A stretch of 64,000 nucleotides of DNA from Hormiphora californensis (GCA_020137815.1 CM035360.1:1984001-2048000), one strand, 5' to 3'; positions 26,201 through 29,200 are shown, numbered from the stretch's first letter. The notes: a model not told the origin generated them from the letters alone. A program made the numbers and translations.

Positions 26201-29200
26201 AGGCCAGGCCTTGATAAAGTGGGTTTCCTTCACTCGGAACTAATTCCCCAACCCATAACCAAGAAGTTATAACTTAAACGTATGTGGATCGTACTGTGTG
26301 TTTTATCTGTGTGGAATCTGCACCGTGCTTAAAACTAAAAACTCGTTCAGCACGATCTATAGGGTTGTGATTGGTCGAAAGATTTTGTTGAAACACCGTT
26401 TTTTGCCACGCAGCCTTGTAAAGAGTGTGCTTGCTGTACGGCGTTGATTCTCACTAATCCCCGGGTTATATACAGTCGGACCCCGATTTACCGGGCTTTT
26501 TGGGGTAATAGCACGGTAACTCGGGGTCTGACTGGGACTCTCCCACCCCTTGTTGTTCTGTCTGGCGGGGGGGGGGCCCGCGTATTAAAATGTCCTTTAA
26601 TGTCCCTCGATTTTTGGGACATTAAATTGTCCGGGGTAATTTGGGACATTAAAAGACATTAAGGGTACGCTAACCAAAAATTTTTTTCGAGTGCAGGGAA
26701 ATCTCTCACCGTAGAGTTGTAGGCCATGCCAAGGAGACCTCAAATATGCAATTTGAGCTCTCAAGTCGAATTCATATTTTTGCTACAGCTGCTTGAAAAA
26801 TGAACTGAAAATACGTTTTTGGCATCTCAAAAATTTTTTTTTAAAGATAGGAGCATGAAAATTTGGGGATTTGAAGAGGACATGAAGGTGAATAACCACA
26901 AAAATTTTTTTTGCAATCCGAGCTGATTTCCGGTCCTGAGATGGATTTCTTTTTTTCCACTTTAACGCCCTATTTGGCAAAGTTCCGAAAACATGTGAAA
27001 GCTGTAAATTGGTGAAAAGTTGCGTCTAACGATTATCTAAGTGGCCATAAATTTTGGGCGTGTCCTTATTTGAGATCAGCTGTACAGAGTTTTTTTTGTG
27101 AAAGCCGTCATTTCAGAAATAAATAAATTCCCTGTATCTCAAAAACGGCTAATCGTAGAGACCTGAGACTATGCTTAAACGATTCAGAAGGTCCGATTTT
27201 GGGGGGGTCTTCTGAGAGACATTTTGCTCCTACTTCAACCGTTTTTGCTGTAATTGCGAAAAACAAATTCTATGAAAAGGGCAAAAGCTAAACTCCAATA
27301 TCCTGTAATTAGGGAATTTTAGCTGAGAAAGGACCGAAACTATGGAAAAATGTTTAACGAGCTAATTCCTTCACTATTTGGTCCATATGGGTCCCTACAA
27401 TCACCAAAAACAAAATCACAAAAAATCCACGATGGCGAAGATGGGTTTTTGTTTTTCGCAATTACAGCAAAAACGGTTGAAGTAGGAGCAAAATGTCTCT
27501 CAGAAGACCCCCCCAAAATCGGACCTTCTGAATCGTTTAAGCATAGTCTCAGGTCTCTACGATCAGCCGTTTTTGAGATACAGGGAATTTATTTATTTCT
27601 GAAATGACGGCTTTCACAAAAAAACTCTGTACAGCTGATCTCAAATAAGGACACGCCCAAAATTTATGGCCACTTAGATAATCGTTAGACGCAACTTTTC
27701 ACCAATTTACAGCTTTCACATGTTTTCGGAACTTTGCCAAATAGGGCGTTAAAGTGGAAAAAAAGAAATCCATCTCAGGACCGGAAATCAGCTCGGATTG
27801 CAAAAAAAATTTTTGTGGTTATTCACCTTCATGTCCTCTTCAAATCCCCAAATTTTCATGCTCCTATCTCACTATGTGGTCATGTCCGATAGGCTCGCGA
27901 GATCTAGTGATTTTGATAGAAAACGCGCAGTAGACGCTCAATTTTGACCAAGATCTAACCTCGTTGCGCGTTTTTACGTGTAAAACCAGCGCTGACAAGC
28001 GCTTTTTTAGCATAAATGTCGCATTTGATACATGACCGCATCGGACCGGTTGCGATGGAAAGGTTGCATAGTAATCTCTAGCCCCCTAGCTTTCTTTTGA
28101 TACCAAAATTTAGGTTGCGCTTTGAACAGAAGCCAGTTTTTGGGCTATAGGACGAACTTTGATGCCGTGCTGTCCAAAACCTGCCGCACTTTCAGCCAAG
28201 TTATGGGTAGCAAAATGATCTTTAGACGATTACCTACAACTGCTACACAATTTCCAGGGTGTTTGACAGCACACGCAAGCGTGCACGCTCCCTGAAAGCG
28301 CCTAACAAAATTGCGCAAAACCCCTTAAAACGGAGGATTCCTATCGGACAAATGCGCGTTTTGACCACATAGTGTATCTTTAAAAAAAAATTTTTGAGAT
28401 GCCAAAAACGTATTTTCAGTTCATTTTTCAAGCAGCTGTAGCAAAAATATGAATTCGACTTGAGAGCTCAAATTGCATATTTGAGGTCTCCTTGGCATGG
28501 CCTACAACTCTACGGTGAGAGATTTCCCTGCACTCGAAAAAAAATTTTGGTTAGCGTACCCTTAAAGGACATTAAAGGACATTAAAGGACAAGAAATTTT
28601 AACCATTTCAAAATGTGTTACCAAACATTTCTACCACCAATGTACTACTAAAGGTCCCATCTTTCGATTCCAATTAATGTTCATTAGTTTTCAGTGGTGA
28701 TTAGGCTTGCTTTTGCGTGGACCGTGGGTGCGGTACCTCTTTTACATGTGCATAATTCTAGGCTAGACGATATCTCAAAATCATCTTATGAAACGAGTAG
28801 AGAACATCCCCGATTTTGTCAGAATAGTGTTTGGTGTCTAATTAGAAGTCAAAAAAGTTTTAGTGGTCAAACCCAAAATATACGATATTTAGGTTTTTTA
28901 GGTTTTTTGGCGTTTATGGGTTTCAGGAACGTCCTAGAACAAAATGAATAAAACCATCTTTCTCGGCGTGAAATTTTGCATCGATTATAGTGGCTACAAA
29001 CCTTTCTATGGCGTAAGGTTAAGAAGTTATCCCAAAAAATCCCAAACGGGTACATCTTATAGGGGCGGGTACATGTTTTAGGCTAACGGGCGAACCTCTT
29101 GTCAGAACACCATGTTATAGGTACTCAATCGACGTGTATTGATGAGGAAATAATTTTAGTGAAAACCATTTTGATCTGCGATGTCTGTGTAACGAATAAA

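Follow-up and report, generated by a model that had tools for sequence, protein, structure and literature searches.

Introduction

Transib elements with 12/23-like TIRs have been described in some insects (Kapitonov and Jurka 2005, as summarised in PMC8355894), the examples named in that summary being Transib5 of D. melanogaster and Transib2 and N1-N3 of A. gambiae. All elements of Transib subgroup I have asymmetric TIRs, and six Transib-like proteins have been reported in ctenophores (PMC9435367), with an alignment of the ends of PbaTransib_0868 from Pleurobrachia bachei provided by Tao et al. 2022 (PMC9435367, Suppl. Data 2, Fig. 11). As for RAG-like transposons, AanRAGL of Aureococcus anophagefferens has 13-bp and 10-bp elements with spacers of 4/13, as well as 5-bp TSDs (PMC9435367), and RAGL-A and RAGL-B elements can show a 12/23-like length asymmetry (PMC10629977). 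ProtoRAG of amphioxus combines the heptamer CACTATG with bipartite asymmetric ends (TR1/TR5) and spacers of 27/31, and it has an experimentally established preference for the unlike 5'/3' pair (PMC8289069). The TIRs of HzTransib are reported to be symmetric (PMC8289069). The genome paper of the ctenophore Hormiphora californensis makes no mention of Transib (PMC8527503).

In this work, we analysed a window of 64 kb of the H. californensis genome (G000:C11:1984001-2048000; unprefixed positions below are counted from its first letter), in which a reading of the sequence alone had proposed a Transib/RAG-like insertion with RSS-like unequal ends. The background invoked in that sequence-only reading agrees with the literature, both for the CACTATG-bearing, bipartite and asymmetric TIRs of ProtoRAG (PMC8289069) and, within the scope of the summary in PMC8355894, for RSS-like asymmetric ends in some Transib families, and its interpretation is largely supported by our data. 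The explanation that we favour, with a probability of roughly 0.8, is that of a young Transib MITE whose bipartite, one-turn-asymmetric ends are inherited and whose likeliest transposase source is a 942-aa ORF elsewhere in the genome.

Structure and insertion site of the element

The element occupies 505 bp of the + strand (27870-28374) and is, as the other genome copies and their consensus indicate, a non-autonomous Transib element (MITE) of a young subfamily, here called A. It has perfect 13-bp termini, CACTATGTGGTCA. The left terminal block (27870-27882, + strand), whose RSS-like heptamer CACTATG lies at 27870-27876, is directly abutted by an inner block, TGTCCGATAGG (27883-27893, + strand), which makes a 'short' end with 6 nt between heptamer and inner block. 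The right terminal block (28362-28374, - strand, read inward) is the exact reverse complement of the left one. At this end only, an extra spacer of 11 nt, AAACGCGCATT (28351-28361, - strand), precedes the second inner block (28340-28350, - strand, read inward), yielding a 'long' end with a heptamer-to-inner-block spacer of 17 nt and hence a difference of 11 nt between the two ends. The sequence-only reading had given exactly these coordinates for the insertion, together with its 6/17 spacers and a 5-bp TSD, TATCT, the two copies of which lie at 27865-27869 and 28375-28379 (no strand assigned).

Each end harbours one full copy of the inner block, with a 7-nt partial match at 28042-28048, which rules out that this block is one among many subterminal repeats. 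A 10-mer, AAAACGCGCA, is found about 50 nt inside the left end (27920-27929) and, inverted, at 28353-28362, where it accounts for most of the 11 nt that set the right end apart. A second subfamily, B, and other copies have also retained it near left-end position 50. It might serve as a further binding site or reflect the origin of the spacer.

The insect Transibs with 12/23-like TIRs, as PMC8355894 summarises them, resemble the MITE in their 5-bp TSD, CAC heptamer and two types of ends with spacers about 11 bp apart, but their spacers are ~12/23 and their inner block is A-rich and nonamer-like, whereas ours are 6/17 with the GC-containing TGTCCGATAGG. PbaTransib_0868 has the same architecture as the MITE, with a terminal block of 12-13 bp that starts with CAC, a conserved inner block, predicted TSDs and ~10-11 extra nt between the two blocks at one end only. 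Nevertheless, its blocks, CACAGTGGGTAA(C) then GATGCTATATTAGGG, are unrelated in sequence to those of the MITE, its long spacer lies 5' of the gene rather than 3' as here, and the family was described from a few loci, in contrast with the young burst of MITEs reported below. AanRAGL also combines a 13-bp terminal element with an inner element, unequal spacers and 5-bp TSDs, but its spacers differ by 9 rather than 11, and it encodes RAG2L in addition. Lastly, ProtoRAG has the identical heptamer CACTATG and bipartite asymmetric ends, with a spacer difference of 4 versus 11 here.

The MITE splits one arm of an inverted repeat. Arm 2 (27448-28565, + strand) carries the insertion, while arm 1 (26659-27267, - strand) is uninterrupted and contains AGATA (26845-26849), the reverse complement of TATCT. 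When the left and right flanks of the reference were joined with one TATCT retained, they aligned without gaps to 27267-26659, with 99.5% identity over 609 bp, and the corresponding site in the other arm reads CATGCTCC TATCT TTAAAAAAAAA, with a single TATCT. The insertion is thus precise, and the paralogous host arm is an exact empty site. Contigs from three DNA runs (two studies) also contain joints that pass directly from 27864 to 28375, skipping 510 nt, with five shared letters; their depth is very high on the flanks only. As these flanks are highly repeated, such joints are best read as paralogous copies of the host repeat and do not prove that an allelic empty site exists.

The host itself, an inverted-repeat element with a loop of ~180 bp and arms of ~609 bp that are 99.5% identical, is very abundant. 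For a 230-nt segment of its flank, the genome search gave over 688 candidate matches, many of them with 100% identity, which indicates that the host element is very young.

Distribution of the family in the genome

A DNA search of the genome assembly (110.7 Mb, 45 contigs) with the element returned 43 matches. They comprise 19 full-length subfamily A copies that are 95-100% identical to the query, one further copy that is part of a segmental duplication, and three subfamily B copies that are ~81% identical to the query, the others being older or truncated. Subfamily A copies have 2-31 differences each from their consensus, and subfamily B copies ~1% mutual difference. The copy in the window departs from the subfamily consensus at six positions, which, together with its intact TSD and the empty paralogous site, bears out the earlier proposal that it inserted recently. 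The MITE family is probably still mobile.

All copies were oriented and their flanks read, and independent insertions were counted. In this check, which the sequence-only reading had proposed, 5-bp TSDs proved to be a property of the family: they are perfect in 23/23 independent copies, and their sequence differs between copies. With a GC content of 48% versus 43% for the background, they show no strong GC preference, in contrast to the GC-rich TSDs that have been described for Transib and ProtoRAG. Every intact copy has CACTATG at its two ends, and the terminal block CACTATGTGGTCA has 63 exact genome copies versus 4 for the reversed control.

CAC termini are not unique to Transib, and one might therefore suspect another CAC-ended superfamily, such as CACTA/EnSpm, or a chance inverted repeat. 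CACTA elements make 3-bp TSDs. The uniform 5-bp TSDs, the genome-wide counts of the end pattern (57 matches versus none in the control, see below) and the physical linkage of the family to an ORF with a Transib-type fold effectively refute both ideas, and the family belongs to Transib.

Several of the matches call for separate comments. Solo ends on C10, C12, C8, C7, C9 and C13 were considered and rejected as elements, being truncated remnants without partners. The one at C9:4398204 (L057:7017, - strand) is a rearranged end, in which the solo terminal 13-mer is joined not to the inner block but to MITE positions 27-42 as their inverted complement. Two MITE copies each contain one nested insertion. 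In the copy at C11:2290792-2296737 (L032:993-6938), this is a 5.4-kb LTR-type element (TG...CA, direct repeats of ~0.7 kb), and in that at C12:6475394-6476782 (L033:495-1883), a 0.9-kb piggyBac-like element that starts with TTAA and has CCCTTTG... ends. Scans of metagenomes for the ends of the element found nothing.

Asymmetry and conservation of the ends

The combination of CACTATGTGGTCA and TGTCCGATAGG separated by 0-20 nt occurs 54 times in the genome, with gaps of 0 or 11 nt only. A looser pattern, CACTATG and GTCCGATAG separated by 0-30 nt, has 57 occurrences as opposed to none for the reversed control, so the pattern does not arise by chance. All 57 ends fall into two spacer classes, 6 and 17, and complete elements invariably combine a short with a long end. 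The asymmetry is present in both MITE subfamilies, an older copy, the transposase-bearing locus described below and several solo ends, and the length of the spacer is kept in subfamilies A and B, in copies L027 and L059 and at the transposase locus. The sole exception is copy L026, with a 9-nt deletion in the spacer and an intact TSD. Thus, apart from L026, the asymmetry noticed in the window is shared by all members of the family and is not a private indel of one copy.

The terminal 13-mer and the inner 11-mer are also kept in elements that have no other left-end sequence in common. Subfamilies A and B differ by ~19% internally, yet their first 36 and last 38 nt are identical, the latter stretch including the 11-nt spacer. 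Under neutral divergence, the chance of zero changes in these 74 nt is ~2e-7. These comparisons indicate that the bipartite ends are under constraint. As for the 11-nt spacer taken alone, the conservation of its sequence is not significant (P ~0.1).

Does the asymmetry itself have a function? One may envision that a single 11-bp insertion occurred in an ancestral right end and was simply inherited, with a transposase that needs only the 13-bp tip or tolerates any spacing of the inner block. All copies trace to one lineage, and the spacer behaves accordingly in several respects: beyond the P value of ~0.1, 2/11 of its positions are changed in the decayed copy L027, as expected for neutral decay, and the L026 deletion coexists with an intact TSD, although that deletion may postdate insertion. 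In addition, symmetric TIRs are found in the majority of Transibs, including HzTransib (PMC8289069), and a Transib-type family of this kind thrives in the same genome. It is more difficult to reconcile such an accident with an inner block that is perfect at both of its positions in spite of 19% internal divergence, with the recurrence of the layout and its ~10-11 extra nt in a Transib of unrelated sequence from another ctenophore, or with the measurable preference of ProtoRAG for the unlike end pair (PMC8289069). A functionless asymmetry is a serious possibility, albeit one that we would not bet on. We rather argue that the layout is maintained and not accidental, because the Transib of P. bachei has other blocks in the same architecture.

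Candidate transposase

In agreement with the earlier note that the window encodes no transposase, none was found in these 64 kb by tblastn and a profile search. At the scale of the genome, a search with the Pfam RAG1 profile (PF12940) detected only a sub-threshold C-terminal fragment on C6. Using this fragment as a protein query of the genome led to two long open frames on C3, of which the first is an intact ORF of 942 aa, present as a single copy in the assembly (C3:8638196-8641021; L045:5394-8222, - strand). It provides a candidate for the Transib/RAG1-like transposase whose present or recent occurrence in the genome the sequence-only reading had predicted.

By itself, the 942-aa ORF matches HzTransib (6pqn) with an E value of 1.2e-11, and a word-based protein search yielded one weak match. 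A full HMMER scan returned 638 relatives, the best with 41% identity and none of them named. With a profile of 30 sequences, the values reached 1.3e-76 for HzTransib, 3.2e-56 for amphioxus BbRAG1L and ~5e-44 for vertebrate RAG1. Columns that are invariant among the 30 aligned sequences include D500, D607, C622, C625, H840, H845 and E863/E867, within the motifs KDGFDGAG, MLDGK, CNYC and SEEAIEA. Comparison with the catalytic triad and zinc ligands of RAG1 (D600, D708, E962, C727, C730, H937 and H942) identifies the invariant residues of the 942-aa protein as their counterparts. In the AlphaFold (AF2) model, residues 390-910 have pLDDT values of ~90 or more, and the model superimposes on residues 21-500 of HzTransib (Z 31.6, rmsd 3.3 A, 470 residues) and on residues 459-1007 of mouse RAG1 (Z 30). 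The predicted structure thus assigns the 942-aa ORF to the Transib/RAG1 DDE transposase fold.

HzTransib (PDB 6pqn and related entries) is the best match to the core of the candidate in both structure and sequence, but it has ~500 aa, whereas the ctenophore protein is extended by ~390 residues at its N-terminus. Among these are helices (320-383, with pLDDT values of only 56-72) that directly precede the start of the DDBD equivalent at residue 390, close ahead of the position that corresponds to the end of the nonamer-binding domain in RAG1. The site aligned with GRPR/K of RAG1 is LRKP in the 942-aa protein, RGPSKK in its paralogue and GRPR or GRP in several homologues, and the model of the 942-aa protein has only moderate confidence in this region. 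Given LRKP where several homologues have GRPR/GRP, an NBD-like role of the N-terminal helices is only inferred. At the other extremity, comparison of the 30-sequence consensus with the query shows that the protein is devoid of the CCHC tail of many relatives. In contrast, ProtoRAG needs RAG2L and uses such a tail. The transposase motifs of PbaTransib_0868 also differ from those of the 942-aa ORF.

Is this ORF linked to the MITEs? A long-type right end, CACTATGTGGTCA-AAACGCGCGTT-TGTCCGATAG, is found 4.9 kb downstream of it in the same orientation (C3:8633295), and the ~390 bp that follow share 77-81% identity with the right-hand portion of the MITE. On the upstream side of the ORF, at a distance of about 3 kb, C3:8644072-8644439 matches two pieces (C3:8614491 and C5:1463207) over their positions 51-408 with 95% identity, and each of these pieces starts with a short-type left end, CACTATGTGGTCATGTCCGATAG. 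At the ORF locus itself, the terminal 50 nt on the left are missing and a G-rich stretch is found instead. The locus thus represents an ORF-bearing element of ~11.2 kb, made of a short left end, since lost, the ORF, tandem repeats and a long right end. The search for a transposase copy bounded by the TIRs of the family, proposed in the sequence-only reading, was therefore successful for the long right end and the 5' region and failed for the left tip, and no complete autonomous copy with both tips was found in the assembly. The tandem repeats of the locus (L045:1465-3302 and 8620-9048) consist of 29 63-bp units, two 487-bp units and 71 CTCACC hexamers.

Between the 942-aa ORF and the right end, no ORF of at least 60 aa was found other than translations of the tandem repeats, and none is RAG2-like. 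A genome search with PF03089 (RAG2) gave no match, the control being silent as well.

The second open frame on C3 is also intact. It encodes a Transib-type protein of 677 aa (C3:3559720-3561753; L046:4721-6754, - strand) with 39% identity to the 942-aa ORF and conserved DDE motifs, and its neighbours are a non-LTR retrotransposon ORF of 976 aa and a 40-bp tandem palindromic array. No CAC...GTG inverted pairs with TSDs were detected when the surroundings of the 942-aa and 677-aa ORFs were scanned systematically.

A further RAG1-like lineage, characterised by a CCHC zinc-knuckle tail, is represented by fragments at C6:4524074-4524640 (L035:4075-4644, + strand), C10:4758568, C4:6134573 and C4:6552568. 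The CCHC fragment scores 24.4 bits against PF12940, just below the cut-off, and its C-terminus closely resembles that of the MleTransib_3931 protein (PMC9435367, Suppl. Data 2).

The missing left tip of the 942-aa locus, the existence of the 677-aa paralogue at C3:3.56 Mb and the CCHC-bearing remnants on C6, C4 and C10 raise the question of whether the MITEs are mobilised by another enzyme, be it that paralogue, a CCHC-tailed RAG1L-like gene now reduced to fragments, or a copy that the assembly lacks. Yet only the 942-aa ORF has family-specific DNA on both sides, and no TIRs were found around the 677-aa ORF. Furthermore, by our own estimate, chance would place one of ~45 family matches in the right orientation at 5 kb or less from this single-copy ORF in only ~0.2% of cases. 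Mobilisation by a different transposase thus appears unlikely, and the 942-aa ORF is the most likely source of active transposase. It would then act in trans, since its element has lost its own left tip.

Discussion

Several observations sit uneasily with the explanation that we favour, a young MITE family with inherited asymmetric ends served by the 942-aa ORF: the absence of a left tip at the ORF locus, the single ORF copy, the LRKP sequence and TSDs that are not GC-rich. With these points in mind, we propose the following scenario. Insertion involves 5-bp staggered integration by a RAG1-fold DDE transposase. By analogy with structures and assays of HzTransib, RAG and ProtoRAG, the terminal 13-bp block would be bound by the catalytic core, with cleavage at CAC, and the 11-bp inner block might be read by a second DNA-binding part of the transposase, likely the helical region at the location of the RAG1 nonamer-binding domain. 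Since one end has its inner block set 11 bp deeper, about one helical turn, the inner blocks in a paired complex would be one helical turn out of register, which could favour the synapsis of unlike ends. The asymmetric layout itself is inherited and conserved throughout the lineage.

It is tempting to speculate further that this ctenophore Transib, apparently RAG2-less, enforces pairing of unlike ends only, by one helical turn, with its N-terminal domain reading the inner block. If true, the logic of the 12/23 rule would predate RAG2 and be older than Bilateria. We nevertheless consider this idea doubtful. All elements descend from one lineage, and the uniform pairing of short and long ends could thus reflect inheritance rather than a rule; for the same reason of shared ancestry, a preference for unlike ends in synapsis is beyond the reach of sequence data.

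The novelty of these findings is modest, as asymmetric bipartite TIRs were already known in Transib (2005, 2022), ProtoRAG and RAGL. They are less new than the sequence-only reading implied, because such TIRs of Transib and RAGL elements, ctenophores included, are described in PMC9435367, PMC8355894, PMC8289069 and PMC10629977. The current picture, which already includes asymmetric TIRs for Transib, RAGL and ctenophore elements, is unchanged. What the H. californensis family adds is a clean, young example of asymmetric bipartite Transib ends among the earliest-branching animal lineages. Young copies, a candidate enzyme encoded by a single ORF and a family with symmetric ends make up a small experimental system to address whether the end asymmetry of RAG and Transib is functional without RAG2.

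In such a system, the symmetric-TIR Transib family of the same genome represents a natural control for the asymmetry of the ends. This second Transib-type MITE family, of ~0.93 kb, is exemplified by the copy at C10:5618794-5619729 (L050:5711-6646), which has symmetric TIRs of at least 40 bp, CACTATTTGGTGGAAAGCAAATTCCGG..., and a 5-bp TSD, TGACT. With 139 ends genome-wide, it is more numerous than the asymmetric family.
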